Positions 7,516-55,000 of a stretch of DNA of 64,000 nucleotides are shown here, piece by piece. Within the stretch, counting starts at the first letter, position 1; the number at the start of each line of letters is the position of its first letter. The position numbers and the translations under genes were made by a program. The stretch is from contig OZ176051.1 of assembly GCA_964247055.1 (NCBI GenBank), positions 8,370,001 through 8,434,000 of the forward strand. The letters run 5' to 3'. The notes below the pieces were generated by a model, which saw only the letters and a program-made list of their open reading frames with translations, made no database searches and was not told where the DNA came from. The stretch comes from Paragordius varius (taxonomy: Eukaryota > Animalia > Nematomorpha).

Positions 7516-10500
7516 TCAAGCTAAATATATGTATTCATCGGGATATTCGTCCCCCCGCCGTTTCATAAATTGTTTTTCAATCAAGCCCTCAACACATTTC
7601 TTTATCATTGGGACACTAGGGAGAAATCGATGTTTGGAATGCTCTATGACCTAAATAGCCACAATAAAAATTGTATAATATAAACCTAGCCAATCAATTT
7701 CGTATTGAACATTCATCTTTAAAAATATAAAAGAACTTACAATAAAATGGCAACAAATGTTAATATAATTAGGAGAAAAATATTAGATTAGGTCCTGTTT
7801 TTTGACTCCTTCGTATTTATATACATGTACGATAAAATTTGGGGTCAGAAACTGAACAAATTCATATAGCTGGTTAAATTAAGTGATTTTGGCTTTAAAA
7901 TTTAAATATAGTATTAAACAAGTGCTTTATATAATCGTAAATATAATTTATACAGGGATGTCCAAAACAAATGTTTTCGCGGTGTGATATTTTCCGATTT
8001 CTGACAATATATTTTTAAAATAATCATAAAATTTTGATTAAAATCCACATTATTTTACATTTTTTAGATGACCTTGGACATTCCTGATTTAAATAGTGGT
8101 GACCAATTATGTCCAGTAATATTTTCTTTTTTGACACTATGTCTTTGGATGTATTTAAAATTAGTGTTTGATAGCAGAATTAAATAAAAAAATAACCGGA
8201 CATCACAATTCGTTAGATTAAAATAATCAATGTTTAATATTAATAAATAACCGATTTCAACAATTGTAATAATGTATAATTTGGAAATACCCAATAAATT
8301 TATAAATAACCTATAAAATAATAATAAATTTCAAAAACATTCAAAAGCGACATCATCTAAATACCTCAGGTATCAAATTGTTGTGATGTATAGATTTTCG
8401 AGATTTCAGTATGCGTACAATCACAGTTTGTAAAAATAATTTTCGGTCCTCTTCAATGGCATAATTTGTGGCATCAGAATCCTTCAATTTAAAACAAATA
8501 TATAATCTATAAAAAGCTCATTTTTGTATAATTTTGGGGTTTAACATTTTGAATATATAGTAAAACTAATTCTAAAACCAAAAAATATCTAACCAAAAAA
8601 TGAGTTCTCAATACTTTTGCCATATATTATTCTATTTTTATATAATTTTTTCCCTCAAAAGTACGTTAGTTTATAATGTAAAAATCTTACGTTAATTCCA
8701 ATCATCAGAGTGTCTGATGTGCCAATGTTAACAGCATTATTCCCAGTATTTTGTGTAAATATGTGTGCAGGTAAGTTAGGGGGTAAAATTGGTAATTTAA
8801 TCTTCGTTTTTTTGTTACTAAAACTTTGGTTTAAGGCAAAAACACCACATTCCATTTGACAACAAATGTGTTCTATCATAGAAATTTTGGATTGATCCAA
8901 AATGGTTGAGGTAGTGCCAGGATTGGACATAAGAAGAAGAATAGATTTTGTAGATGGTACAATTTCCAATGTATTATCCTTTGAAAGGTAAAAAAAGCGG
9001 TTAAACACGCAATAAAAGGAAACTTTAGGTGATATAGTGGATAAGGCACTTTTTAGTAAATAATAACCTCTATAAACTATACATGCGTTAATAATCAAAA
9101 TTATCCTGAAAAAAATATCCAATTTTTCATGATAGAACTGATAAAAGTTGTGCGTAAAGCTATCATAAAGACATTATATTTAACACTTGGTATATATTTT
9201 ATCATACATTTAAGACTAAAACGGATTATCAACCAAATATTTATGGATAATAAACCTTATTTTTTTATCAACTAAGGTCATTTATTCTAGTAAAAAAAGT
9301 AAAATATGACTTACAATAGTGTTAATTTTGTACATATCAAGCACGCCGAAATCCAAAAAAGTTAGGAGATGTCTTTTAAGTTCGGCATTAGCAAGTGTTG
9401 TAACACTTTGTATAGTATCGTATGTAATATAAGGGGAAAGGCACCCTTTGTTCTCACTATTTAAATTTTTTGCATGATTTTTATTATTCTTGACATTAAT
9501 GTCATACGAGTCATCGTTAAAGAGGAGTAAAATAGCCATTTGATAAGTGTTGAGGGATAGGAAATAAGGCTTAGTCAAGTATGTCAATTTCAATTCACCT
9601 ATCGAACAAAAAAAAAGAATATGTAATAGAATATTTTCTAATCTAAACTGTATATTAACAAAATTTATAGCTTATTTTCCCCGTTATTCATAAAATACTT
9701 TGGAAAAATCTTAATTTATTGTAAACAATTTTGCTAAATTATGGTTAATTGACCTAAAAATAAATAAGAATATTTAAAGATATTGTACGCATTGATCATA
9801 TTCATTAATTAAGTTGTTAAACATCAAAATATTGATAAAACTTAAAAATACCCATAGAAAGATGAAATAACCAGGTGAGATTCCGTTTTTTAAAATTTGT
9901 CCCATAAAATTGTTCAAACTAAAAAATAAATAAAACATTTGTAATGATATATCGATAGTATATATAATTTGATTGTATTAATTGCTAGAAATTCAAATAA
10001 ATTAAAAAAACCCAAGTATATGCAAATAATTTAATGTAAAAAATTTGGAAATAACTTTGCGAAAATGATAAAGTAATGGTATAAACCAAAATATAACGTT
10101 ATCATATGTAATTTTAACTTAACATATAATTTAAATTTATTTTAAATGTAAAAAAATAGTTTTTCTATAAAACTCTTATTTCTTTCCTATGTTTGGCAAA
10201 AAATTACTTGATTTAGGCATTTTTCCAAAATTTGGGGTGCCTGAAATGATGGAAGATTCGATTGATTAATGGGCCATGAACCAGCCTAATAACAAATAAG
10301 GAATATTCAACTTAAAATTAACATTTAAATTCGCAAAACATTTAATTTGTTTCGATTCAAACAAAACGTTAAGACACAAAAAACTATATTTTGAGCATAA
10401 AAGTATATCAATAAAAGGCAAAAATGTATTTGTGTAAAAAAAGGACCTTACATTAATTATATGTATTAATAAAATATAATACCTGTAAAATATAAACGGA

Positions 10501-13500
10501 AAAATTTGAAATGGGAATCCCTCCATCATTGTCGTTTTTGAGCTTAAGAGATTGGAAAAACTTTTCATTCAAATCTTTGCTTATGCGAATATCGGTAAAC
10601 ATGCGCGTTAATTTGCTAGTGAAATCAAAACCACACGCTTGCTATTAAAATAAAATTTTGAGGTAATTATAATTTAAAACATATTTAAAGGATTTCATTT
10701 TAAAAATAGAAAATATATAGTTAAAATTTCAACATATTTTGTTCAGAAACTGTTAAAAATTTTTTTATTAAAAACTGTGTAAAGACTAAAAATTTATGCA
10801 TTTTTTCCCCTTTTTGTCGACAATTATCATTCATTTTATCAAAAATCTAAAAAAGTAATTTTTAAATAAAACCTTTAACTTATTAATCATATTTTCTTCC
10901 GTATCCAATGATTGGGAGGAACCAAAAATTAACCGTTTTGCCAACATATTTGCATAAAACTTGTTTGGTAAAATATAAAACATATAAATTTGGATAAAAT
11001 TTAATGATTTAATAAAAATTCTAACAAACAATAAAAAAATATAGATTATTAGAGACTTTTTTATATAACTTTTAGTAAAATAGGATATAAATTATTGAAA
11101 GATTGAATAATATAACGCAATAAACTATTTTAACAAAATTAAATATTTAAATTTATATGACGGAGAGCAAATATACAACAATTTTAATTCTGCTTGTGGC
11201 TTTTATTATATTATAAAAGTATTAAATTAAACAAAAAAGTATAAAATTTTTACTTGTTGGAAAGTATCTTTATCTTGCAAATATTTAAAGAGTGTCACCA
11301 CGTTACTCAAATTTATTTCAATATCGGTTTCTGACATTGAGCGCGGGTTTTTCTTGAGCAAAATATCACAATATCGACTAAGCTAAAATATATATCACAA
11401 ATTTAATAACATATATTTAAGATAAGATATATACCATTTACGATTCAAATTCACCCTTGAAGGATTCAACTTATCCTTGAACAGTTCAAATGCACTCTAA
11501 AAATAAATTATGTGTTTTCGAGCTAATGTAACTCATTATTAATATGAAATATATCTTTATGGCTTAGTTTATTTATTTTTCAGTATAGTTTTGATTTTAA
11601 CGAAATTACATTTTTTAATAATATAGGTTATTTTTAAATTTAAAAAACACATAATATATTTTAGCGATTTGAATTATTTAAGGGTTAATAATGTGAAATG
11701 TTCAAGGGTTAATTTAAAGTGTAAATGGTATATTAACCGATTGAAAATATTCATTATTTTAAAATTAAATTAATTAAATATAAGCATACTACCTGTTCAG
11801 GTGCTCGACAAAATTGTTTTCCGGGTGATTTGTAATTTATTGCATTTGTACAAGCCTATTTTTATATATATAATTCTCGATATTATTGTATTGGTAAAAG
11901 CAAATATTTGTGATATTAAAATGATATGGTTTAATAATAAAGGGGACCATATCTACACAACAAAATATAAAAATAAATGTAAATCAAATATTTATCACCC
12001 AATTTTAAAACTCCCCAAATAACCCAACAAATAAATTAAAATATAATAATAATAATGTTTGAATTGCATATTTAAGAAAAACTAAAAAAAACTCAGGATA
12101 AAAACGCATTCATTTTAACAAAAAAATATTTTAAAAATATTACTCGATCTAAAGCTAGTAAAAACCGGGTATCGTTATCAAACGTGATAGCTATAAATTG
12201 CTTAAATTTTTGATGAGTGCTCAATATTGTTTCAACGTATGATACCGGATCCTAATATATATAAATATAAAGTCAAATGTACGTCTTTTTATGTGGAATA
12301 TTTATTCGATATGAATTTACCCTTGATTTACATGTGTGTGTGAAAATAACTATTTAATATTTTTATACGCATAAATGACATATTTTTTAGCATTTCCGGG
12401 CAAATTTTATTATTAAAAATACTTTATTATAGTTTGAATCAACAATATGATTGATTAAATTTCAAAAAGTTATTTATACAATTTTTTCAAATAAAAACGT
12501 AGTTAAAAAATATATTTTTTGCAAACTTTTATCCGTTCTCATTTCACAAAAAAAATTATACATATTATTTACAATTCAAGTCACCCTTAAACAATTCAGA
12601 TTTACCCTTAAACAATTCGACTTTACCCTTGAACAATTTATTTCACCCTTGAACAATTCAAATTCACCCCTAAACAATTTAAATTTCGTCGAACAATTCA
12701 AATTCACCCTTAAATAATGGAAATCCACTGTAAAAATAAATTATTATGTGTTTTCGGGCTAATATAATTCATCATTAATATGAAATATATTTTTACGACA
12801 TAATTTATTATTTTTTCAGCATTATATTAATTTTAAACAGAATTGCATCGTTTAAAAATATTAAAAAATAAAGGTAATTTTTAATCTCAAAAAAACACAT
12901 GCTTTATTTAGGGTGAATTTGAATTGTTCAAGGGTGTGAATTTGAATTGTTCAAGGGGGAATTTTAACTGACACGGTATAAAATATTTAAATAATTATTT
13001 TTTTTATAAAATTATATTTTAAGCAAACGAAATACATTTTGTTCTTCCATAGCAATCATTTGTGCCATTAAAACTTCCGTAATGTGTTGACATAGTGTGT
13101 CCATTAAAGCTTTTAAACTGTCATCGATTGGATTAAGTAGGGTGTACATTAAATGTAAATCTGAAAAATAATTAGGTTTTTTTTAAAAAAAATTATTATG
13201 ATTTATATAACTTTTAGTTAAATGATATATATATTTTTGATTTATTTTAGTTAAATTATAAACTATACAACTAAGTAAATTTTAAAATTCATGTCAATAT
13301 AAGAAAAATAAATAAATAATTCATAACACAAATTATTAATAGCAATTTCAATTTGAAAACTTGATAAGGTGTTAATAAAAAGCTGTACATTGAAAACAAT
13401 ATAAGACACTTATAAACCCAAATTAAAAACCGATTTATTAACTCTTTTTTGTCTTTATAAATATGCCCCCAAAAAACCTTTAATGAGTTCATCTCGAATC

Positions 13501-16500
13501 ATATCACGTGCTTCGGTATGTAAAAATGGTAAAACATCGGTAACCAATCGCTTTTGGCACACTAATTCAACCTTGGGGAGTGTGCTGTGATCCACCAAAC
13601 TTCTATTGCGACGTCCTTCCTCACTCAATTTCGCTACCACCTATATGTATAAAATTTACAAATTTTCAAAATAATGTTTGACTTTGTAAAAATGTTTGCC
13701 TTAAAGTTTTTATGTTTTTTTAAATCTTAATAATTATAGGGTGTTAAAAAAGGATCATTATTCTAACATAGAAATTACTGGAATAAAGGGAGAATAAAAC
13801 TTGATATTTTATAGTAATTACTGGATTTTTAAAAAATTATGGTAGGGTATATTTAAATAATAAGGTTTACTACAGTTTGATATATAAATTTCTATAATTT
13901 CTCATTGAGACGAATTCATTTACCCAAAAAATGATGCGATAAAAAATGATTGCAAAAACTTTAATGCTCCTTCCGCTAACAAAATGAATCGAAAAGTGTA
14001 TCTGAACTCGTTTGATAAATGTAATTGGCCTGCAAATTATTACAGGTTGGCAACAAAAGATTTTCCATTCCAAAATCAATGTGTTTAACGGCAAGGCTCG
14101 ATTTCAAAAAATCGAGAAGACCTTCTGAATCCTTTATCAAATATCTATTACGAGTGAAGTAAGCCGCGGCCATATGTGAATATGATATCTCATACTTTTA
14201 TAGTTGTTTTATAACAAACAACACAACGCGGAATCAGAATTATTATCGCGCTTCCCACATGTAAAAAAGTAAGGCGAACAGGAGTAAACATAATTGTGAC
14301 ATTAAAATGAACTAACCACGAAAAGCAAATGAGCTCAACAATAGTTATGTGCAATAGGTGTGGTTACAGTCTCCTAATATCAATGTATTCAATCACATTG
14401 CAATTGATCATGTTAATCGAGAATGAATGATTAGTGTAGAAAACATTTGAAATGGTATAGATGGAAACAAACCACCAACAATAGACAAATAAGTATTGGT
14501 TTATGGCATAAATTGTTAAAATCTATCGTACGTGAGCAATGCTTGTTTGAGGAAGGGAATTAAGAGAGGTATTTGCGACACTATCAAACGAAAATATATT
14601 AATGTTATTGTTAATAAAAATCTCAAAATCCCTTTTTAAGAATAAGGTGTTACACTTATCTTCATTTGTATGGGGATTCGCCATTTAATTGGGGTACACC
14701 CGTTAAAATTTCTCTCCAACTTTTTCTTGATCTAGCTTCTAGATTAAAATTAAAACAATTCGAGCTTTTGACATTGTTTTAAACCATGTGGTAATCAACC
14801 GAGTATTTTTTATAATAGTAGGGATATGCGCATCTTTCCATCTTCCCATGTTCAGCCCATTTTAACCGGGAGATTTCTAGTAACATTGTTGAGGGTGGGA
14901 AATCGAATACCTTCAGCAGATCGTTGATTGAAACAATTATATCCTAAAAAAATTAAACGAAAAGGACGACCTAGCCATTGCAACTTAAAAGGGAAAAATA
15001 ACACGTTTAGTAAAATCAGGTATAATCAGTAGAGCCGAAAAAGAAATGACATAGCTACTTTCATTGTAAATATTATTGGGCTAATGAAGATCTTATTTGT
15101 CCGATCAGTTAGTGTACAAAAGCTACGTTATACAATACCCTGGTCCCGGCTCTAATTTTTAAAGTATGGTTGGAGAAACATTTTTAATTCTAAAAGACGC
15201 TTATTATCAAATTCCTATATGCGAAGAGTGCCAGCACCCTTTAAAAATCACTACACCACTTGGGTACTTTACTTATCAAAAAAACAAATTATGATATAAT
15301 TTTTAATAGAACATTCATATAACGACGTGTTAGTAACCAGCCAAACAGAATCAGATCAGACATAAAATCAAAATTTGATTCTGCAAATGCAGGGAGTCGG
15401 TCTTAAGCTACATGGATATATGAAATATTTTAAACCTTTAATAAGTTATTTGGTATATATCGTTTGGAACCAAGAAGTCGTGAATCCAAAAAATAGAGAC
15501 CCTAAAAAATTGTTCCAGATCTATTGATAGAACATCCCTTAATTCCAATAAATCCTTTGCCAATATTCATTCTCAATAATTATATGAAAATAAATTAGAT
15601 ATTGTATAACATTATATCATACCTGCTGCATATATTGGGGACAATTAAGTTTTTCCTCGTTCAACAAGTGTTGACTATATTGCTTGTAGTAATTGCTCGT
15701 TTCGGTTAAATAAGCATCTTCAAATACACTTTTATACAACTATATACAAAGAGTCATATATATAAATATAAAAGTTCCTTAATTCTTAGTTTTTTACTAA
15801 ATTAAACGGATCTTTAATCTTAAGTTGGTCCTTGAACAAGTTCATCATTTAACATTTACCTTAAGCTTGGATAAATATAATTATATTGTATTTATTATAT
15901 ATTTTATCATTTAACTATAATAACTTTACTATAAACTTTTTCATAATTGATCATAGATTTTATTAATCTTTTTAACGCAAAATTGTTAATAATTCAGAAA
16001 ACTTATATATTTTCATATTACCCATTACAAATAATCAAGATAAAAATAATTTTCTAGATTGAATAAAAAAATATAAATTTTAAGCTAAAAGTTGGGCTTG
16101 AATAAAAATAGTTAAATGAGGACATTAGGTTGATGTGTATTATAGATCGTAGGCTTCGCTAGATAAAAGTTATGGGAGAGAAAAGAATGTCTGAAAAACA
16201 AGTCGAAATAAAAGGCACTCCTTAAATGTTCAAAGATCAACTTAGCGTATTAATAGTATGTATGTAAATATAATTAATCGGTTAATTTCCGAGCCCAAAC
16301 ACTTAATAGGCTGCTTACAAATATTTTTTGACGATAAACAGTTTAATATAAAAAATATATGGATAACTGATATATTATACTCTTTTAGGATATTTGGTAT
16401 TGCGTTCAACTTCTACTAAACTTTGTATGACTTCACTTAAAAGTGTCAAATTGTAACAAATGTTTGGGATAAGCTTTTGATCATACGTAACACCATTGAG

Positions 16501-17790
16501 ATGGGAATTTTTACCCAAATTTATATGGTTATTATGCATATGTGGAATGCTAAATAATGCATTCCTTTCTTTTTCTTCAAGGTTAGGCACAGAATTACTA
16601 ATATAAACATTTTTTTATCTCAAGAAACAGTAAAAGCTGATAATATTTAAATGGATATTTGTTATAGATACATAAATTATGCAGGCCAATACTAAAAAAT
16701 TAAATTTATTTTTGCTTAATATGCTTGAAAGAAAAAAGTACCTATATAAACCGTTATATCTGTATGAACATATAAACAGAACCATATAGCTGTTTACTTT
16801 TAAACAATAAAATATTTTAACCAAAATTTCAATAATATACCCCGATTTGCTCAAATTATTATTATTAGTTGAAGTCAAATCATTTATACAATTATTATTA
16901 GTGTTGATTGCATTGGTTTTGTTATCATTCTGTAAGGAATCATCTAACGTTTTAGGAACTAAGGACGTTTCCAATGTATTGGCTTGATTAAAATTGGCTG
17001 TGAAATTGTCACATTTTTGGCGTTCAGCCAAAATAGCGGTCATAAGCAAAGACATAATTCGATATGCATTAGGTTCTATCACATACGATTTCCAAATACT
17101 CAGAGCTAAATCACCAATCTCAAGTAACATAAGGTTTGTGGGAGATGTATTATAATAGACCGGATTTGAAGGACCTGCTCCTACATCAGCATACAAATTA
17201 TTGTGAGATGAAACATCAAGAGAATTTTGAGAATCGTTCATGGCGGCGACGTGGTGATTGTTGGGACTTCCAAGCATGTCCACAAACATGCGACCATATT
17301 TGATGTCGGCTTCTTTGTACTTTTGTTTCCGGATGTATTGTGCATTTAAATAACTATTATTCATAAATTTGAAACCAGTAAATAATATTCGTGTTTGAAA
17401 AACAAATTTAATTAATAGTAATTACCTATAAAGCAAATTGAGATATAAAGCTCCACGACTATAATCTGTCCAATGTTTGTGATACATTGTCAAGAAGTGT
17501 TCGTTTGAAATAGCATGCAATTTCTTAAAAATATAAAACCTAATACCATGTTAATATCTTGCACATGAGATCGCAAAAAAGCATTAGTTGCTTGATAAAG
17601 TTCTTCACACAATGGATCAGGTATTGCGGTACATATGACATAAATATCCCTAAATTTAATGTAGTGCCTACAAGAATCTATCGCTCCAAATATTTTTGGG
17701 AATATTTGAAAGTGTCATAACGCCATGAATTGTATCTTGTATTCCATTCCAAACATTATCAAAATTAACCCTCCTGGGTTTCAGCGACAT
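7516..17790 (-). CDS. CUL2: Cullin-2 (CRL2 E3 ligase scaffold), 19 coding exons, 989 aa
   Basis: Exons in transcript order: 17790-17672, 17649-17547, 17523-17426, 17353-16841, 16597-16381, 15739-15623, 13640-13478, 13160-13036, 12251-12144, 11855-11793, 11382-11254, 10959-10873, 10641-10483, 10285-10208, 9918-9852, 9598-9315, 8978-8691, 8481-8365, 7650-7516. All introns are GT-AG, phases match, and the CDS is 2970 nt. The translation follows CUL2 throughout: [66 protein letters not shown], neddylation motif [10 protein letters not shown]-terminus [12 protein letters not shown]...DEYIYLA*. Confidence 0.95.
7953..8086. mobile_element. Small TIR element in last cul2 intron
   Basis: TA|CAGGGATGTCCAA ... 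TTGGACATTCCTG. Confidence 0.45.
11432..11730. mobile_element. TA-flanked MITE with subterminal ~20-bp repeats (cul2 intron)
   Basis: TACCATTTAC ... GTAAATGGTA flanked by TA; subterminal units AATTCAAATTCACCCTTGAAC inverted at the two ends. Confidence 0.7.
12560..12978. mobile_element. Same MITE family with expanded 20-bp repeat array (cul2 intron)
   Basis: About 7 copies of AACAATTCAAATTCACCCTT at the left end; inverted copies at 12910-12960. Confidence 0.65.
13900..15560 (+). pseudogene. Degenerate Ty3/Gypsy gag-pol relic, antisense within cul2 intron 6
   Basis: gag-like [30 protein letters not shown] and CNRCG knuckle; RT segments [18 protein letters not shown]...ITTPLGYF (15193), YNDVLVT...GLKL (15318, decayed YxDD); multiple stops and frameshifts. 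Confidence 0.75.
17524..17546 (-). other. 23-nt GT-AG intron (cul2 intron 2)
   Basis: GTATTAGGTTTTATATTTTTAAG. Removal restores the frame to ...QDINM|[25 protein letters not shown], matching human MYHRYWEEYSKGA; retention frameshifts to a stop. Confidence 0.88.
17650..17671 (-). other. 22-nt GT-AG intron (cul2 intron 1)
   Basis: GTAGGCACTACATTAAATTTAG. Removal gives DRF-L-DIYVIC, matching human DRFSDIYALC; retention gives an immediate in-frame TAG. Confidence 0.9.
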
Positions 17791-18769
17791 ATGATACCAA
17801 AGATTGATTTAATGAAACTAACATTTTTATAAGCTTTTTTGTAAATCACCTAAAATTACCGAAACTTTGGTGATCTGAGTAATAGATGAATAACACGAAT
17901 TAATATTGCCAGTATTTTGAACATAGCCTATATATTTAAAATCTTAAACATTTTGACTAATATATATTAACACTTTGTTACCTCTTTTCTTTTTTGCCCT
18001 AGTTTACATTTTTAGGTAGATTTATATCCCAAAGATGATTATTGTCACTAATTATAATTTAAAAAGTTTTTCTCGTTAAAATTAAATTGTTATCAAGCAT
18101 TGCACTTTTTTATAAAAAGATTATATTTTTAGCAGTTTGGATGAGTGTAAGAATGGGGAAGAAGCGCCACCCAATTGATATGAACAGCTTATATTTAACT
18201 CAAAATATATCATGTTTTTGTTGTATAATTTACCCTGACAGCACATTTATTTGGGTTGCATTAACGAATCTAATTATAAAAAAATAACGGTACAAAGATG
18301 CGGATTAATTATAAAAAAAATTTAAATAATGCACTTAAAATGCTAAAAAAAGTATATATTTAAATTTGGCTCAATACTTTAAATATTTATAATAATCAAA
18401 CTTCAAATGGCTCTAAGATATCGTACCTTTAAAAATTACAGCAAAAAATTTGAGATGAGGGATTTTTGACAATTTTCATTTGTTAAAAAATTATTCTAGC
18501 CCTGGGATAAAACAAAAAGATAATCGAGTGTTAAATCGCTAATCCAATAGAAAAAAATGAATATTATGGTAAGAATGTTATTTAACTTTATTAAGATAGG
18601 TTGTAGCAAAAAAATTTATTTACTGATTAAAAAAAAGCAGTTTGGTTCAACCGTGTTTTTAAAATGCCCCTAAAATAAATCTTAGAAATATAAGTTTTTT
18701 ATTTATTACAGGATAATGTTTAATAATTAATTTTAACTAAAATTTATTTTATTTTTTGCAAGATTGAGA

Positions 18770-19625
18770 GAGAATAAAGCTATCCCTCCTTGCGGAAAGT
18801 GAAAGGTCTTGAAGTGTTAAAGCAAATACTTGCTGCAAAAACTTGAGATAAATCCAGGTATCCAGAAAAGGGTGTCTGCTCCATACCGTCACTGTCCGCA
18901 CAGGACGACCCTTAGCGCCTTCCTACGCTTTTACCCGCCTCAGGGCAGGGGGACGTCAATCATTCTTCAGGGCTTCTAACAAAGATATTCAATGGAACGT
19001 ATAATATATATATTTATAAATGCAAAACGTATCATAGGAGGTGTCCCTCTCATAAATTAATGGTAACAAGTTTGATTACGGCTGACCCAATGGGTTATTG
19101 TCACTTAAACCGTCTGGCAAAGCCAAAACGAGATCGACATTAAATTATAGTTTAAGGCCCAAAGTAAATGTCAATTATGGATAAATGTTCATAAATCAAA
19201 TAAAATTAATAATAATAAGTTAATAAAGGTAATCAAATAAGTCTTATCTGTTAAGGCTACATCCAAACTGCTACAGCTACACAATCTCTGCGAAGACAAT
19301 TCTGCCTACCTGACGCGACATCCCCAAGCGCTCCTATAATTATGCCGGGAATGGCAAAGGCATACAGTGAGGTTGTCGTAGAGCCCGGTAGGAGACCCTT
19401 GCAGAAGATTGTATAGTGTAGTTAGTGCCATCACGGAAGACTATGCAAGATCAGACAGCCATGTCCTATTGATTGCCAGCTATTGGTTCTGCGCAGTCTC
19501 CAGAGTAGTGTATCAATCTTCCCAATCCGCCCCATTAGCTTCAGCCAGCGCAAAGCCACTATCCAACATTTTCATTGATTGCATTCTAGCCTGGAGGGGA
19601 ATTCTCCATAGTTGCGTCCAGTGTC
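18770..19625 (-). repeat. GC-richer unclassified TE-like relic between cul2 and ppib
   Basis: Two blocks of higher GC (18770-18990 and 19250-19625). The reverse complement of about 19330-19420 matches 33505-33565 (TGCAAG..TCTCCTAyCGGGCTCTA; GGCATAATT.TAGGA.CGCTTGGGG). Confidence 0.5.
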
Positions 19626-19922
19626 TGATATTTAAATCAATTTTTTTCTCCTTTTATATGATAAATGTTAACAATTTTGTATTTTTTAAATGTTTTTTAA
19701 ATCATGGGCATAAAAATAAGAGTTTATTTTTTTTACTCTATTTAATCATTCTGGATTATATAACTGACTCAAGGAGGATAAATTTTATTTTGTTAAATTA
19801 GTTTACTCATATTATAATATTTACTTTATTTATGATAAAATTTATCCTATATTTATCCATCTAAAATTAAATAAATTTTAACATACGATACATATTTGGT
19901 TGTGTGTCATAAACGTGTTCAA

Positions 19923-22852
19923 ATGCACCTTATTATTTTGGGGATTACTGTACTTGCAGCTTTTGTAAATGCTGAGAAAAAGGGCCCGAAAATATCTCAC
20001 AAGGTTACTTTTTATTTAATAAAAGGTTACTTTTCATATCGATAAAGGTGACGGGTTAGATTATCAACTTGAATTGGCGCTTTTTAAATCGACGCCTTTG
20101 ACTGTTAAGAATTTTTTAGTTTTGTGTGGTCAGGAAGGTGAGAGCCCTTTGGAAAAGAAATTGCAAGGCAAATATATTGGAACAAAATTTCATCGAATTA
20201 TTAAAGATTTTATGATTCAGGGAGGCGATTTCGAAAAGGGAGACGGCACTGGAGGTAATTAGCTATTTTTATATATAATTCATTTAGGTTTAATATTTTT
20301 GTTCATCCATTTATTTACTTGGCCATTTTTTTTACTTTTTGGTAGTTTTCTAATTAAAGCTAATTAATATTCAAACATCTATAATTTGGGTTAAAAATTT
20401 TAAAATACTATTAAAATTGCCTGCCATTTATATCAGCTTTTGCCGCTAATTTTTGCCTTTTATTGATCGCTAAGGGATATAAATACATATATTCGTTAGA
20501 TAATAATTACAAGTACATTAAAATGTATAATTCAGCATCTTATAATATATGTTAAAAATCAGTTTTTTAGATGTATAGAATAACCATTTAAGTTTCTTTG
20601 AAATTACAGAATTATTAAAAAATGAATTTATTTAAAATTATAATAATTGGAAGAAGTTCCCTTTAGATATTATCCAAAAAGATCTACATTTAACAAAAAG
20701 TGTGAAATCATTATTTAATTTAATCTAAATCATAATAATTAATGAGTTTTTCTCCTGGGATTTAAAATAGCCAATTTTTTTGTATTTAATAAAGGTTTCA
20801 ATTCAATTATATCCATTAAATTATGTTATCGATATTACTTGTATATAAACTAGAAAAGTTTTCTTAACTTAAAATATCCCTTAAAATTTTAGTCGGGAAA
20901 ATTTATAATCCTTTTGGTCATAAAACCCATTTAATCCAATCATTGATTATTTAAACAAACTCTATACTTTTAGGGAGTAGTATTTACGGGGATCGCTTTG
21001 CCGACGAAAACTTTAAACAAAAACATACGGGCGTAGGAACCCTTTCTATGGCAAATGCTGGTAAGGACACGAATGGTGCCCAATTCTTTATAACGTCCAA
21101 GGAAACGCCATGGTTAGATGGGAAACATGTTGTTTTCGGTCAACTTATTGCAGGATTGGTAAGAACTTTTTTTTATCAAATTTAAAGACAATTTTTTGTT
21201 TAAAATCTCTATCTTATTTTGTAAACCTTGTCTTTTTCAAACCTATTTAATCATTATTATTTTGGGTTGCGCGAAACAAGGAACAGCCGATATACTTTTA
21301 ATTATCATTTAAGTCATATAGAGATGTAATCACAAGGAAAAAAATAATTTGTTTCTTACAGACAAAAATATTGATCTTTTAATTCTTTCCTTTTTTTGAA
21401 AATATTTAAACTAAACCTATATTCTTTATGCATTGAAATCGATTATTAGCTTGTTTGATTCATATTTTATGTAATAAAAATTTATAAATCGTAAAATTCT
21501 TCATAGTTAAATATATATTTCAGAATTTTCGATAAAAATTATAACCTTTTTAAATGGATACCAATATAAAAGGATAAACCATTTTGTATATAATTTGGAT
21601 ATAATTTAGTTTTAAATAAATTATGATTGAAATTTTTATGCAAAAATTAATTTGTTTCCTTGGGTGTTTTGCAATTAATTAACAATTTTACTGTTTTTAT
21701 AAATGATAATGTGCGTGTGTATTTATATCGAAACTGTTATAAGTTTTAAAATAATTCGTAAAAAAGTTACGAACCCGTTTTACACTGGATAATAATATAA
21801 TAATTTTTTATTTTTAGGTTTTATTTATACAGATGTTACCCTTATTTTAATTTTATTGTTTACTAAATACACTGTGTGCGAAAAAAAATTATTTCATAAT
21901 ATAACTTATAGCCAGCGAAATCATTTGTGGCAAAAAATTCTTATTTGTTGACAAGACCTAGTTTTGAAATATCAAGATAAAATTAAAATTGAGTAAAAAG
22001 TAAAAAATAAGGTTAATTAAATTAAAATAAAACTTGAGATATTGAAAGATATCATTTTATCAGTATTTACAATTTATAAATAGCCTAAAATCATATAGTT
22101 AAGTTATTCTTTAAACTGAGATCAGATATTCTTGTATTTTCTTTGACATCCTTCTTTTTACGCAATTTTTTTATTTAAGTATAATAATTTTAATATTTAT
22201 TAGATCTCATATTATATACAATAAAAATAACTTATAATCAAAATATAGTTTTATTTTTTCATTTTTTTGTCATTGAGTTTATGAGTGTATAATAAATCTA
22301 CTGTTTTATTTTGGAACAAATAACCGGAAAAAAGTATATAAATTTAAACAAATAAAATTTACAAGTAGTGGGATATCAACCAAAAATTCTTATACAAATC
22401 CCAGTAAAAATATTAATGTGTTTCAAAAACTTGCTAATGCGATTTATATTAATTTATTAGATTTCAAACTTGAAATTGTAAAATGCAAACCAACATAACA
22501 ATTTTTTCTAGTTCTTGTCAATTGAATAAGCATATTTTTACTTATTATGGATATCCAGATAATCGCCCTAGTTTAAGATTTTAATATGACAAATATAGTA
22601 CAATATTATTAATTGTATTATAATAATAAAATAAATTTTCAACAGAATAACTTTCGTGCGCTTGAACGATCGCCTACAAACAAACAGGATAAACCAGTCA
22701 AAGATATAATCATTCGTAAGATTGATATTGTTGATGTGAGTAATCAAGATTTACGTTACGCACCGGGGAGTGAAATACCCGACTTACCTACGCCCTCATT
22801 GGACTCTGTCCTGGAAAGTTCTCAAAATGGAAAACAAAGTCATGAATTGTGA
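19923..22852 (+). CDS. PPIB: Cyclophilin B-type peptidyl-prolyl cis-trans isomerase (ER-targeted), 4 exons, 233 aa
   Basis: Exons 19923-20003, 20026-20254, 20974-21158, 22646-22852 (702 nt). Signal peptide [17 protein letters not shown], then [57 protein letters not shown]; ends SHEL*. Confidence 0.95.
20004..20025 (+). other. 22-nt GT-AG intron (ppib intron 1)
   Basis: GTTACTTTTTATTTAATAAAAG. Removal gives GPKISHK|VTFHID (compare GPKVTVKVYFD); retention frameshifts to a stop. Confidence 0.88.
21870..22430 (+). mobile_element. Solo arm of the 1.26-kb foldback family (ppib intron 3)
   Basis: TA|CACTGTGTGCG... aligns with 52891-53490; no partner arm. Confidence 0.6.
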
Positions 22853-23223: not shown

Positions 23224-23556
23224 TACCATTTACAATCAAATTTATCCTTGAACAATTCAAATTCACCCTCAAACAATTCAAATTCATCCTTGAACAATTC
23301 TAATCCTAAAAATAAATTATGTGTTTTGGGTTAATGTAACTCATCATTATTAACAAATATATTCTTATGGCATAGTTTATTATTTTTTCACTATTATATT
23401 AAATTTTAAACGAAATTTCATTATATATAAATATCAAAATATATAGATGATTTTTTTATAAAACTTTTAGGGTGAATTTGAATTGTTCGAGGGTAAATTT
23501 GAATCGTTCAGGTGTGATTTAAATTTTTTAAGGGTGAATTTAGACTGTTAATGGTA
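23224..23556. mobile_element. Same MITE family
   Basis: TACCATTTAC ... TTAATGGTA with the same subterminal units. Partial copies at about 27810-28032, 35610-35760 and 52290-52350. Confidence 0.7.
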
Positions 23557-30093: not shown

Positions 30094-31941
30094 TTAACTA
30101 ACAAAATGATTCCACCAGCTCAAAGCTTTATGATTCAACATTGGTATCAACCAAAAGGATAGGAAAGCATTGGAAGTATACATGGATAAGAAAACGATTG
30201 AAAAAAAGTATGAAATTGCCAAACTCGTGTCACCCCATTCAGGATGGATCGAGAATATTGTAAAACATATAATTTCAACTATGTAGATTAGAAAAAGGGA
30301 AAATGCATATTTTATGACAGAATTTTCTCGACGTTTCCTTAAAGCATGCCTTTCACGCCTCAATGAATCGGTGGGATAGGGAAGGTCCATTTTATCACAT
30401 TTTGTTAAAGTTGTCGATTTATCAACACCATCTTGTTTTGTCATCTTTTTCGCAATCTTCCAGGGGTTTGGAACTTTACTAGTTACATAGTCTGAAACGG
30501 AGAAAGGGTTATTTACCGTTGTATTATTCGTGTTTGTAGTTAATGTCGTAGTAACATTATTGATTTTTCTACGTTGTTTTTGTAAAAACACTTTGATATA
30601 AATGTACAAGACAAGGGTCGCCATTATGTTCATATATTGCCACACAATGTGCACGAGGAATATGGGAATTCTGAAGCCATGATAATTATTGTAACAGGCA
30701 TAAAATAGGGGCACAAAAGCCACATCCCCTGCAAGAATATGTAACACACGGATGACAGATGAAATCAACCATATGAATCCTATAATACACCAAACTTTGC
30801 CGGGTTCCAACCAATTCTTTAGCCTTGTGCTGTGGGGAAAACATACCATAATGAATCTGAACGATGAAAAAAATATGAAATTATTCAATAAATATTTAAA
30901 GAAAGGACAATGAAAACATTTAAAATTGGCTGTAATTTTAAGATGGAGTATATCCATGTTAAATTTCTGGAGCCTAACAGAATCTAAGTTTTTTATATAA
31001 TAATTTAGGTGGCTCATTATTTTTATGACAAGATAAAGTCTGGTTGGTTTCCGTTTGCCGGATTTTATTTTCGTTTCGCCAAACGATATTATTTAGATAA
31101 TATTTTAAGAGTATTTTAATCTTTTCTGATCATGAACTTTCATTGAATAGTTTTTATATATCTGATATTTGTTATTTTGTCTTTAGGGCGACCCAACTAG
31201 TTAACATTATAGGTTATAATAGTTTTATTAAATGAAATAAGGATTAGACGAATACATGTATCTGTAAATCGACACATTTAAAGTTTCAAACATATATGTG
31301 CTAAACAAGCAATCATTTCAATATCAAATAAATATAAATGCTTGATATTCCTACTTAAAAAGGAATTGTAGTATATTTTTCGAAATTTCTTATGAACAAT
31401 AAGTTACTTAAACCCTAAAAGTACGTTATCATGAAGTAGTAAATATAAAGTGCAGCGATAAAAATTAGCTATATTTTTTGGGCCATGGATTATATTAAAA
31501 AAATCAATTTAAAACGGGGATATTTTCTTTTTTTCGATTTTCCATTAACATTTATATATTATTATCATATTTCATGGTTTTTACCATTTTTCCTTCCCTA
31601 ATTAAATAATATACAAGATATGCTAACCTATTTAGGGCTAATGCAAACATATGGATAGAATTTGATAACAAGAAAGTTTCATTCAACCAACCAAAAGTTC
31701 GGCACACCACCACGTGATCCATGAATAAGGGTGTCAAAATACCCAACAAATAATTTGTAATGTAAGTTATGGCACCCAAGATATCACAAGCCGTAACACT
31801 CAGAATAATGATGAAAGTTGAAGATTTTCTCATTGATTTTGAGCGCCATATAACGCCAAATAAAATTATGTTTGCAACGGTCCCAATCCCAGCTATTAGC
31901 GTAAGAATAATGGAAAATGGATATCTGGGATTATTTTTCAT
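30094..31941 (-). CDS. Orphan class A (rhodopsin-like) 7TM GPCR, 2 exons, 358 aa
   Basis: Exons 31941-31628 and 30856-30094 with a phase-2 GT-AG intron. TM1 GTVAN, TM2 ACD, TM3 with Cys (VVCRTFG) ending ALNR|F across the junction, TM4 Trp (GFIWLIS), long ICL3, and TM6/TM7 hydrophobic segments. A short N-terminus leaves an upstream exon possible. Confidence 0.85.
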
Positions 31942-41343: not shown

Positions 41344-43456
41344 CTGTATTAGAAGAGCTTTTTGTAACTCAGGAGTCTATCTATAATAAGGATATCTCCG
41401 AAACCCGATTAACAGCTAATTGAATCAATAAATATCAAGTTTTTGCTGGAATATAAACTGAAAGCTTACTAAAGTTAATTATATACATTTTCTAACCCTA
41501 ACATACATTTATTTGCCTTTTGTATTAGCATTTAAAAAAATTTAAAGAAAAAATGGCGGTAAAAAGGTTAAAAATGAGGATTTTTTACAATTATACATTT
41601 TTAGATAAAAATTTTTTGAAGCACCCTAAAAAGCTAAAGAAAGCATATTAAATTTGGCACAATTCAGATATTCAAATTTTAATTCGCTCAGAGATATAAA
41701 ACCCTAACAAAATGAAATAGAGTGTTAATAAGATAAAATCTTACAATATAAGTCAAATCATTGGAAAAGCGAGTGATGTCTGGCAATGAAGCATCAATCA
41801 ATGAATCTTCCAATCTCCTAAGCTATAAAATATGTTTTCATTATTTAATATGGTGATAGATATAAAAGATACAACATATTATATTTTTTTATACTTTGGC
41901 CATGTCAGATTTGGTGACATTATGATACAATAAATAGTGATCTATGTTACGCATTTGAATATCAAGTATCGTTAGACATCGATCCTCAAAATTTTGTGTT
42001 TTAAGGTGTCTGTCCTCATCAAAGACTTCAACTCTAAGGGGAATTTGGGTAGGCATGAATGTTCCAACATCGTAAGCCAAGAGACTCAGTAATAAATCAT
42101 GATAAGCTCTACAAAAAAATTATAGTATTAATACATATTATATTAGTACCTCAAAAAAATCTAAAGATGCAACCGAAATTTTGCAGGATCTTTTTCATAT
42201 CCAATAATTTCTTTGTCATATCTTTTGAGCGCCTTTTCGGAATACAGGAAAAATTGGGTTTGAGAATTAGTTTTCATATTTAACCGATTGAGTCGTACCA
42301 GAAGTAAATTCGTTAAATTAACCTGTAAAACGTTTTAAACCATATTTAACATAAAAACACGTAAATATTTAGTTTTGCTAATATAAATATTATGTTAAAA
42401 TACATCTATTTGGACAACTTACACTTTTAAGAAATCCACCAAAATTCTGGGGTGATATTAGACGGTATTCATTCTATAATAGTAATTAGGATATAGTGCA
42501 AAGGATCATATAAGTTAACTAGAAACACTACACTTATTTTATGAATTTTCTTTGGTAAATTTTATAATAAAAGATACTCTTATTAAAAAAGGTGTTTAAA
42601 AAAAATAAATTAAAAGGATATCATCGAACCCATTCATTTTTCTTTTCCAATTTTCGCATTAGAGCAATATGCGATTCATATATTGTCATAATATCCCTAA
42701 CATTTTCCCGTAATCCTCCTAGCACCTCATAAAACTGGGCCGTAAGATTTAACTCGTGAGCCAATTGGTCATCGGTCATTAGATTGCTGGGTAGGAAAGT
42801 TTGTAACAAAACATTTTGAACAAGCTTGGGAACTGTTACATTGTGTGTCTTCTTAACATCCCCAGGTCTCCAGAATTGCCAACCCCGATCACTAACATAA
42901 TTGATTACGATGGCAAAAATGAAGTGCATATCTTGGTGTAAATAATTGATTTGTTTGCGTAACAGTTCAAGTTCCCCCGGTTTATACGTTGTTGGTTGGG
43001 TGTAGGGTAAATTATAAAGCTTACCATACCGTTGAACATGTAAAAAATCTGTAATTTGTTTAATCAAATGTTGTTCATTCGTAAAAACGGTATCATTTAC
43101 ATTCTCAGAAGAATTAAAATTGACATTTGTGTCGTTTCCTAAATCATTTTCTCTTTTTAATAAAACGAAGTTTTGATATAACGGTTCAGTAACGTAGGCA
43201 TGGTGATGATAGAATTCTACGCAAGAATTATAAAATCTTTGTAAATCTTGGAGGTGAACGAAACCCGGACCATAGATATCCTTCAGATTTCGATCATACT
43301 TTCCACCTATAGATATTATTTATTAAATAAAATATTGTAATATGAGTTATTTGGAAATGGTTTTAAATATAAATTTATTTAACATAATTTTGAAAAGGAG
43401 TCTTTTACATCCTTAGGTGTATAAAAATTAAGAAAAAATACTTTTTTAAATGCATA
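41344..43456 (-). CDS. Highly divergent neprilysin/peptidase M13-like gene (partial; possible pseudogene)
   Basis: Phase-consistent exons: 43456-43384 (tentative), 43306-42630, 42322-42150 (or 42174), 42108-41895, 41822-41745, 41376-41344 (tentative). M13-like motifs recalled from memory: LC|GKY (FACG), RFYNSC (FYxSC), ENVRDIM...EW|V...RLNRLNMK (DW...KLDKM), SNDLTYI|TPELQ. No HExxH was found, and one splice choice leaves an in-frame TAG. Confidence 0.5.
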
Positions 43457-45953: not shown

Positions 45954-46329
45954 TATGTTTTGTAAATAACAGTTGTTAAAATCCGTAATTAATGATAAAG
46001 GATAATTAAATAGATTTAAATGAAATTATAAATTTCAAATTTTCAGTTTAATTTTCATAAATTACATTAAATTTAATTTAAATTCGTAAAACCAACTGCA
46101 TTTATACCAAAATTGCAAAGTTGGATATATATGCGAAATCGATATGCGAAAACCCCATGTCAAATAGTTGTGTCGTACTGATGAGTGCTAACAAGCATGA
46201 AACTAGTCTGCGATTACTATTGACGAAGGGTTTCACATATCGTTTATAATTTCTATTTATAATTTCATTTAATTCTATTTAATTATCCTTTATCATTATA
46301 TTACGGATTTTAACAACTGTTATTTACAA
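45954..46329 (+). mobile_element. Hammerhead-bearing inverted-repeat element (Penelope-like pLTR or retrozyme-like relic)
   Basis: Near-perfect inverted arms of about 73 bp (45960-46032 and 46256-46329) enclose the ribozyme. A 13-bp direct repeat TTACAAGATTAGC lies at 45941-53 and 46324-36. Confidence 0.6.
46173..46213 (+). ncRNA. Minimal type I hammerhead ribozyme (Penelope-like)
   Basis: Stem I UCGUA (46173-77) pairs with UGCGA (46209-13); core CUGAUGA 46178-84; stem II GUGCU-aaca-AGCAU; GAAA 46199-202; stem III C-UA-G; GUC cleavage triplet 46206-08. Confidence 0.85.
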
Positions 46330-52024: not shown

Positions 52025-55000
52025 TTAATTGTATGTAGTACAGTTAGGAGGAGGTCTTAAAACTTGTGGTATTAGATTTTTGAGTCTTTCATTTACATCG
52101 TTATACACTGCGTTAGCTAAAACATCCAAAATTGATATGTGGTTATAATCAAATCTTTGCCCATTCGTAGTCGTTCCAACAATGCAATTGGTATTTGGGT
52201 TCAAAAGAGGACTGTTTGAACATAACTAATATATAAATTAATATATAATATCATTGAAATCTCAAATTTATATTTAATCATCTTATCATGCCTGCAAAAA
52301 TTCAAATTCACCCTGGTACTATTTAAATTCACCCTTGAACAATTTGAATTTCGTTCTAAAAAATTTTGTGGGTTCAATATCAACTCAAAATTTAATTAAA
52401 ATATTTGACACTAGTCGGCCATTTTTTTAATAGTTATTCTGGTTAGTATGCAAACAAAGCATGATTTAATACAAAAAAAGGCTGTTTAAAACGAAAGTTG
52501 TCTTTTATAAAAATCCAAATAGGAGACCAAAGTTGGAAACAGGAAAAGAACTATGCCCAAAACAAATATCCATTTTCTACAAATAATTTAGAGGGTTCCT
52601 ATATGTGTCAAATTTGAAGAAAAAAAGATTAATTATTCAATGTCAATATGAAGTTTCATGGTGATATTAGTGCCGATATAATTTATCAATCATTTTTATA
52701 TCTAGATAATAATACAATTTTGGTCCCTGGTGTGTTGAAATTGGTAAATCGTTGATTAGGAACCTCATATACAAGTCTTTCGTTTCCAACAATCCCATTG
52801 TATGCATTGTGCTGTAAAACTGGAATCAACAATGTTTGCGTGCATGTGTAGTTACTTTAAAAATATTATTATTTAAAAAGTATTGCTAAACTCTGTGTGC
52901 AAAAAATTTTTGACAAAAAATTTTATTTTCATGAGATAGCCTATAACCAGCGTATTCATTTGACGCTAAAATTTTTATTTGTTCAACCTAGCATTTGAAA
53001 TACTGAGAGAAAATCTAAATCGGGTAAAAAGTGAAAATTAAGGATAATTCATAAAATAAAGATAAAATTTGAAATATGATTTATTATAATTTTAGGAGAT
53101 ATTTTCAATATATAAGTAGCCTAAAATCATATAGTTAGGGTTACTATAAAATTTTAGTTCAAAATAGGGCGTTTTTCTTTTATCACACTTATAAGACAAA
53201 AAAATTTAATGAAACTATATTAAAATATTTTTTTTTAATTACATATTACCTAAACTCACTATTAAAATCTTAACATCATATTTTATTCAGTAAAAAATAC
53301 TTATTCAAAATAAAATCAAAAATATTGTTTTTTATTTTTGCATTTTTTGTCATCTGGTTTATGAGTGTATAAAAAGTTTATACTGTTTTATTTTGGATTC
53401 TTACATGAGTGGGAATCATTAAGTATATGATTTATGCAAAATAGGATTTAAAAGTAGTGGAATATCATCCAATAATCCCTATAAATCCCTGTAACAAATA
53501 TTTTATGACAAATTAATATTTGTATTGGGATTTGTACGAATTGTTGGTTGATATTCCACTAATTTTAAATCCTATTTTACATAAATTACATACTTTATAA
53601 TTCGCACTCATGTAAGATTCCAAAATAAAACAGTATAAATTTTTTTATATGCTCACAAACCAGATAAAAAAATGTAAAAATAAAAAACAATATTTTTTGG
53701 ATTTATTTTGATATATAAGTTTTTTTACTGAATAAAATATGGATGAAATATTAATAGTGAGTTTAGCTAGAAAATAATTTAAAAAAATTATTTAAATATA
53801 GTATATAAAAAAAATTTGTCTTGTGAGTGTGTTAAAAGAAAAATGCCATCTTTTGAATTTAAATTTTATAGAAACCCTAACTATATGATTTTAGGCTATT
53901 TATATGTTGAAAATATATCCTAAAATATAAATAAACCATAAAATCCCATATTTAATCATTATTTTTTGAATTATCCTTAATTAACCTTAATTTTCACTTA
54001 TCGTCCGATTTCTTTTTTCTTTCAATATTTAAACTTGGTTGTCAAAAAATAAAAATTTTGGCGGCAAATGAATTCACTGGTCACTAGCTATCTCATGAAA
54101 AAAAAATTTTTTTGTTAAATCTAAATGACCCTCTTTTTTGCACACAGTGATATAATAAGGATACTTTTAAAACACTCTTAAATTTTTATTACTTTTCTTT
54201 TTTAACTATATATGGGATGTTTTTGACGTAGGCTTTAATCTGTTAACACTTTGATTCGAATTGGGGTATGTAAATACCACAGACTAATGGTTATTAAAAA
54301 AATAAAAAAACGGTTCTAATTCAATTCTATGCTTCTATTCCTATAAAATATATAAAAACGCCAATATATCTAAATATAGTTTGTTTTGAAAAAACTCCAT
54401 GAACATTTTGACGCCATTTTTACAACATTATTGCAAAATATGCGTTTGATTCTAATGCTAAAACTTAAGTCAATTTTTATTTAAATCACATCTAAGATTA
54501 GAACAAAATTGGTTAATAATAATGCATATTTTATAAAGCTATGTAGACTAAATTATTACCTTTAGGTTTAACCATAAAATTAGTAATACGAAATTTTAAA
54601 TGAATCTTTTATATATTTCGGTGCATTAATGTAATGTTATATAAGTGCAAACCTTTGCTATGGTTTGAGTTTGTTTCATATTTTTAGAATTAATTGATTT
54701 TAAATAGGCCTACAATTCGAATCGGAGGACTGAAATGAATGTGTTGTACAAGTGTTAAATATCTATTATATGAAAATTTTTATGCGGAAATAGTATTATC
54801 AGACATTATTATTTATTAGTAAATTTATCTTTTGATATATTTTAATTGAATAATGTAAAATTTAGGCCAAATAAAAAGATCCGATTACCAATAATTTTTG
54901 ATAGCTGTCAAAATTAAAAACATTTCAATAATTTATGAATTTTTTAACCATAATATATTTATACTTGCCACTTTTATAGCCTCTTTTCATAAAATCTGAA

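Follow-up and report, generated by a model that had tools for sequence, protein, structure and literature searches.

The window analyzed here is a 64,000-nucleotide (nt) stretch of the nematomorph Paragordius varius (contig OZ176051.1, positions 8,370,001 to 8,434,000), and all positions below are counted from its first letter. It carries the housekeeping genes CUL2 and PPIB, whose coding sequences are interrupted near their starts by three introns of 22, 23, and 22 nt, referred to as micro-introns. CUL2 comprises 19 coding exons running from 17790 to 7516 on the minus strand, a structure cross-checked with fetched cullins, and PPIB comprises four coding exons at 19923-22852 on the plus strand (Table 1). 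The two genes lie head to head (17790-19923) with their start codons 2.1 kb apart and with high-copy repeats between them, whose depth rose up to 100-fold above that of unique sequence; segment 17837-17945 of this intergenic region was missing in a second individual. The window is gene-sparse and repeat-rich with 27% GC, and its GC content and repeat load agree with those of the published Gordionus genome (26.9% GC, 64% repeats). Myxobolid myxozoans are likewise AT-rich, so this agreement is weak evidence of lineage.

Table 1. Coding exons and 5' introns of CUL2 and PPIB in the window
Feature	Position	Strand	Description
CUL2 coding exon 1	17672-17790	-	119 nt, ATG at 17790; Cullin-2 residues 1-39, E 3.7e-6
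CUL2 intron 1	17650-17671	-	22 nt, phase 2, ancestral position
CUL2 exon 2	17547-17649	-	103 nt; Cullin-2 residues 41-72; also 103 nt in orthologous locus L011
CUL2 intron 2	17524-17546	-	23 nt, phase 0, ancestral position
CUL2 exon 3	17426-17523	-	98 nt; Cullin-2 residues 79-103
CUL2 intron 3	17354-17425	-	72 nt, next-shortest intron, ancestral position
CUL2 exons 4-19	7516-17353	-	introns 197-1,982 nt, all GT-AG, exons open
PPIB coding exon 1	19923-20003	+	81 nt; hydrophobic leader and GPKI motif
PPIB intron 1	20004-20025	+	22 nt, phase 0, ancestral position
PPIB exon 2 start	20026-20047	+	second 22-nt unit, itself GT..AG; competing 44-nt acceptor
PPIB exons 2-4	20026-22852	+	introns 719 and 1,487 nt

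The CUL2 exons were searched singly against Cullin-2. Exons 1-3 were read in three different frames, and exon 4 began at Cullin-2 residue 107. Pfam did not detect the CUL2 exons, and neither a word search with them nor two metagenome scans returned matches; a large protein search gave a best true match of 46 bits and no close relative, and it yielded the orthologous loci used below; Mesorhabditis was the one organism named by cluster look-ups. Long Asn-rich, lineage-specific insertions occupy exons 4-5 (16841-17353 and 16381-16597, minus strand), adding some 46 residues between positions 132 and 133 of Cullin-2 and others beyond 172, and further insertions were observed in exons 16-17. Introns 8 and 10 hold repeat arrays. 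A 21-nt unit forms arrays, in either orientation, in CUL2 introns and elsewhere (11440-11495, 12571-12718, 12911-12964, 23232-23549, and 52291-52350), and these arrays resemble the ends of miniature inverted-repeat elements. Many GT-AG pairs were candidates for introns in the CUL2 5' untranslated region, and none was singled out. For PPIB, exons 2 and 3 matched cyclophilin, and a word search with exon 2 retrieved distant orthologues only (50-58% identical).

The micro-introns begin with GT and end with AG, and the length of none is a multiple of 3; the coordinates, lengths, and ends given for them in the original prediction were exact. Their removal is necessary because the flanking exons match Cullin-2 or cyclophilin contiguously across the frame shifts. 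Retention of CUL2 intron 1 introduced an in-frame stop that ended the reading after 40 residues, and retention of CUL2 intron 2 and PPIB intron 1 ended it after about 52 and 40 residues, respectively, which bears out the earlier claim that both proteins depend on their excision. Longer GT-AG introns that would keep the frame, named in the original prediction as a possible refutation, failed as alternatives: they cost 4-46 residues or required read-through of an in-frame stop; the closest in CUL2, a 41-nt form of intron 2, dropped six residues, of which four were inside the stretch aligned to Cullin-2. All 19 CUL2 exons and four PPIB exons were open in the implied frame, and every intron was GT-AG. 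GT and AG at exactly 22 nt were present at 0.17% of the window positions. Judged from sequence, the three segments are obligatory and almost certainly real spliceosomal introns.

At the PPIB junction, 16 of the 22 intron bases were identical to the next 22 bases of the exon (shuffle p of 0.009, about 0.05 after correction for six comparisons), while the CUL2 micro-introns showed no resemblance to adjacent exon edges. The PPIB resemblance may be due to chance, local duplication, or conversion. Removing the second unit (20026-20047) instead of the first also preserves the frame. The first unit is favored as the intron because it occupies the ancestral position and because its removal fits 11 homologues better (mean BLOSUM sum of 7.5 vs 2.1). 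Removing both units (44 nt) puts the reading out of frame, with a stop after three codons; thus, PPIB requires the acceptor at 22 nt to beat the one at 44 nt, a size within the range used by nematodes (38-46 nt in the Mesorhabditis cul-2 comparison).

The four runs that aligned to the region behaved as DNA, as introns and intergenic sequence were covered and no splice joints were present. None of the runs listed was recorded as RNA, the search found no RNA run with the region, and five runs guessed to be RNA were without any of the search words. In the second individual (sample X4, same study), gap-free contigs bridged CUL2 intron 1 (17615-17836) and PPIB intron 1 (19867-20249, depth of 530). 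CUL2 intron 2 had no bridging contig among the pieces listed; its depth stayed even, at 438 and 491, with no joint skipping over it. In the deep run X1, possibly the source of the assembly, CUL2 intron 1 had two alleles differing at 17665, off the intron ends. The allelic differences in CUL2 exons 1-3 were three silent and two conservative changes. Assembly error, which the original prediction had named as a way for the segments to be spurious, is unlikely, as they are present in deep DNA contigs of two samples, and for two of the three introns in gap-free contigs of the second individual. A pseudogene is also unlikely, given the open exons, canonical ends, and silent or conservative allelic changes. 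The X1 haplotypes (15550-21300) diverged strongly in non-coding DNA, which points to high heterozygosity; for instance, a stretch of about 570 nt had 53 substitutions and 35 gap letters.

The 21 introns of CUL2 and PPIB measured 22, 22, 23, and 72 nt, and then 197-1,982 nt, with a median of 289 nt. The micro-introns were thus a minority (3 of 21) standing beside long introns of the same genes, as originally described. They were the three nearest the start codons, at coding offsets of 81, 119, and 222 nt, which were the three smallest of the 21. The chance of drawing exactly these offsets was 1/1330, and that of any 5' prefix was 4/1330, both figures being post hoc and from two genes. No micro-intron was observed among the 18 downstream introns, and no intron measured between 23 and 72 nt.

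The sites of the micro-introns are shared with other animals. The same phase-0 PPIB site was occupied in three loci of other organisms by introns of 1,245, 126, and 57 nt. Mesorhabditis cul-2 has introns of 609, 46, and 40 nt at CUL2 sites 1, 2, and 3 in the same phases. In L011, site 1 has an intron of 169 nt and site 2 one of 101 nt, and the exons there are likewise 119 and 103 nt long. The orthologous introns at the three micro-intron sites ranged over 46-1,245 nt. Because position and phase are common to these longer introns, the micro-introns are ancestral introns that have shrunk.

One of them has a further history. In L011, CUL2 intron 1 (L011:2869-3037, 169 nt) is an AT-AC intron whose donor and branch site follow the minor-type consensus. 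The same intron is GT-AG without minor-type signals both here and in Mesorhabditis. Conversion from the minor class to the U2 type has been described as nearly one-way (PMC3584512). As the 22-nt intron has neither of the minor-type signals present in L011, CUL2 intron 1 was probably converted from minor to major type, before or while it shrank. The AT-AC intron in L011 and the GT-AG intron here are like the published U12-to-U2 conversions (PMC3584512), and the difference is that the probably converted intron here was also cut to 22 nt. Loss of the minor spliceosome does not follow from one converted site. Three features had been overlooked in the original prediction: the confinement to the 5' end, the probable descent of CUL2 intron 1 from a minor-type intron, and a PPIB junction that looks like a duplication.

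Minor-type (U12) donor and branch sequences were absent in all three micro-introns. Donors of micro and long introns were both weak and mostly GTA, with no clear difference between them (mean match to the U1 consensus of 3.7 of 6 vs 4.1 of 6). A pyrimidine tract was almost nil in the micro-introns, and A residues were found at -6 to -11 from their 3' ends, which is uninformative in sequence of 68-86% AT.

We consider it probable that ancestral introns shrank to 22-23 nt, that they are excised as U2-type introns, and that such shortening is tolerated near the transcript start. The major (U2-type) spliceosome would pair donor with acceptor across the 22-23 nt intron and branch at an A lying some 6-11 nt before the 3' end, with hardly any pyrimidine tract, in the manner proposed for myxobolids. 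Extreme shortening would be tolerated mainly near the transcript start, where the cap-binding complex would most plausibly assist U1 loading on cap-proximal donors, and downstream introns would remain above about 70 nt and accumulate mobile elements. CUL2 intron 1 would have changed from minor to major type before or during shrinkage. The cap-binding complex reportedly favors the loading of U1 on the donor nearest the cap, an effect that in Drosophila was estimated to fade at about 250 nt (PMC4889658). Help from this complex would fit because the micro-introns are confined to the first 222 coding bases.

Several points weigh against this account. Excision is deduced from genomic DNA rather than from RNA, and removal by the U2-type machinery is argued from the introns themselves; Rfam detected no small nuclear RNA (snRNA) in the 64-kb window, and no spliceosome gene was present there. 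The 5' confinement rests on two annotated genes only. Offsets were counted from the start codon and not from the cap, and CUL2 intron 2 is at best a second intron. Ultrashort introns form the majority in myxobolids and dicyemids, and cap help would therefore not be required in principle.

A more far-reaching reading, which we hold only tentatively, is that a third animal lineage, possibly the horsehair worms, has independently evolved 22-23 nt introns and, in contrast to myxobolids and dicyemids, has two position-dependent splicing regimes within one transcript. A cap-proximal mode would excise near-minimal introns, including some formerly of the minor type, and an ordinary mode would serve the long downstream introns filled with mobile elements.

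A serious rival to the main account, though considerably less likely than it, accepts the segments as real U2-type introns and attributes the 5' bias to mutation or selection on length, so that a 22-nt intron could be cut out anywhere in a transcript. The 5' pattern would then come from deletion bias, from purging of insertions near promoters, or from avoidance of confusion with trans-spliced leaders. Flukes do combine 5'-clustered microintrons with leader trans-splicing (PMC6530080), and in myxobolids and dicyemids most of the introns spliced belong to the 22-27 nt class. However, no intron falls between 23 and 72 nt and none of the 18 downstream introns is a micro-intron, which suggests, for the two genes, a positional threshold.

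The original prediction had proposed a spliceosome that handles a distinct ultrashort class. Its premise of real, obligatory introns stood; a dedicated spliceosome was unsupported, as the donors of the two classes were alike and the micro-introns bore no U12 signature. A modified or second spliceosomal pathway, for example one using trimmed versions of the branching factors, a conjecture made for Stentor, is thus improbable, and the window, being without a spliceosome gene or snRNA, offers it nothing further. In its favor, animal introns usually measure at least about 50-90 nt (PMC13644364), far more than 22 nt, the PPIB acceptor at 22 nt has to win over the AG at 44 nt, and the branching factors of Stentor are divergent (PMC9505925).

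Very unlikely is the explanation that the segments are poorly spliced or unspliced, being mistakes of the assembly, lesions of a pseudogene, or introns that are mostly retained. Excision was not seen in RNA, the PPIB segment resembles a tandem duplication, which is a typical assembly error, and splicing is inefficient for the very short introns of microsporidia (cited in PMC13644364). Against this stand the deep DNA contigs of two samples, the open reading and canonical ends of all 19 CUL2 and four PPIB exons, and the exact match of the positions to orthologous introns. IRE1-type endonucleases remove introns of 20-30 nt from XBP1-type mRNAs. Such removal here would agree in size only and is hardly credible, as the junctions had no significant hairpins (z of 1.27, -0.07, and -1.11) and the GT-AG ends lie at ancestral spliceosomal positions.

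Animal introns shorter than 30 nt have been published for myxobolids and dicyemids, in which they are the majority class (PMC13644364); the original prediction listed the dicyemids correctly and omitted the myxobolid myxozoans. A 2026 survey of 51 animal genomes found such introns in these two groups only and associated them with compaction of the genome. In myxozoans, which splice introns of 22-27 nt, U2 snRNA and U2AF are conserved (PMC13644364). The introns of myxobolids and Dicyema resemble those described here in length (20-27 nt), GT-AG ends, ancestral positions between conserved exons, a donor of approximately GTa, little pyrimidine tract, and A residues near the 3' end (PMC13644364; PMC6543705). 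In contrast, ultrashort introns are the majority there, with medians of 22-27 nt, whereas they make up 3 of 21 here, where the median is 289 nt, and they are found at gene starts only, in a gene-sparse and repeat-rich region. Trematode and other flatworm microintrons likewise form a short class beside a long one and are enriched and clustered at the 5' end, but their lengths peak at 37 nt, compared with 22-23 nt here, below the 30-nt limit (PMC6530080). Ciliates (Stentor, 15-16 nt; Paramecium, about 25 nt) also remove near-minimal introns with a U2-type spliceosome; however, these protists have essentially nothing but tiny introns and no kilobase class within the same genes (PMC9505925, PMC5014332). 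For Nematomorpha, no publication on the length of introns came to light.

Other features were observed elsewhere in the window. A hammerhead-ribozyme-like match (Rfam HH9, 22.4 bits, E of 0.005, below the gathering score) lies at 46167-46218 on the plus strand in an inverted-repeat region. On the minus strand, 30094-31941 holds a two-piece gene for a seven-transmembrane receptor that weakly matches the Srw family (E of 1.6e-5), and 41600-43319 holds a multi-exon gene with a 232-residue open stretch and no family match. The introns of the latter include a probable one of 65 nt (42173-42109) and a candidate of 41 nt (41744-41704); another 41-nt candidate (42149-42109) is better read as the 65-nt intron.

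Aligners and gene finders run with usual minimum intron sizes would mis-annotate N-termini in this lineage. With 22-nt and 2-kb introns in one pre-mRNA, the lower size limit of the spliceosome would be testable with internal controls, and the PPIB junction, where one acceptor lies at 22 nt and another at 44 nt, would be a ready-made test of that limit. The occurrence of 22-23 nt introns at the starts of genes alone, in a repeat-rich, gene-sparse setting, would mean that intron shrinking is separable from genome compaction.

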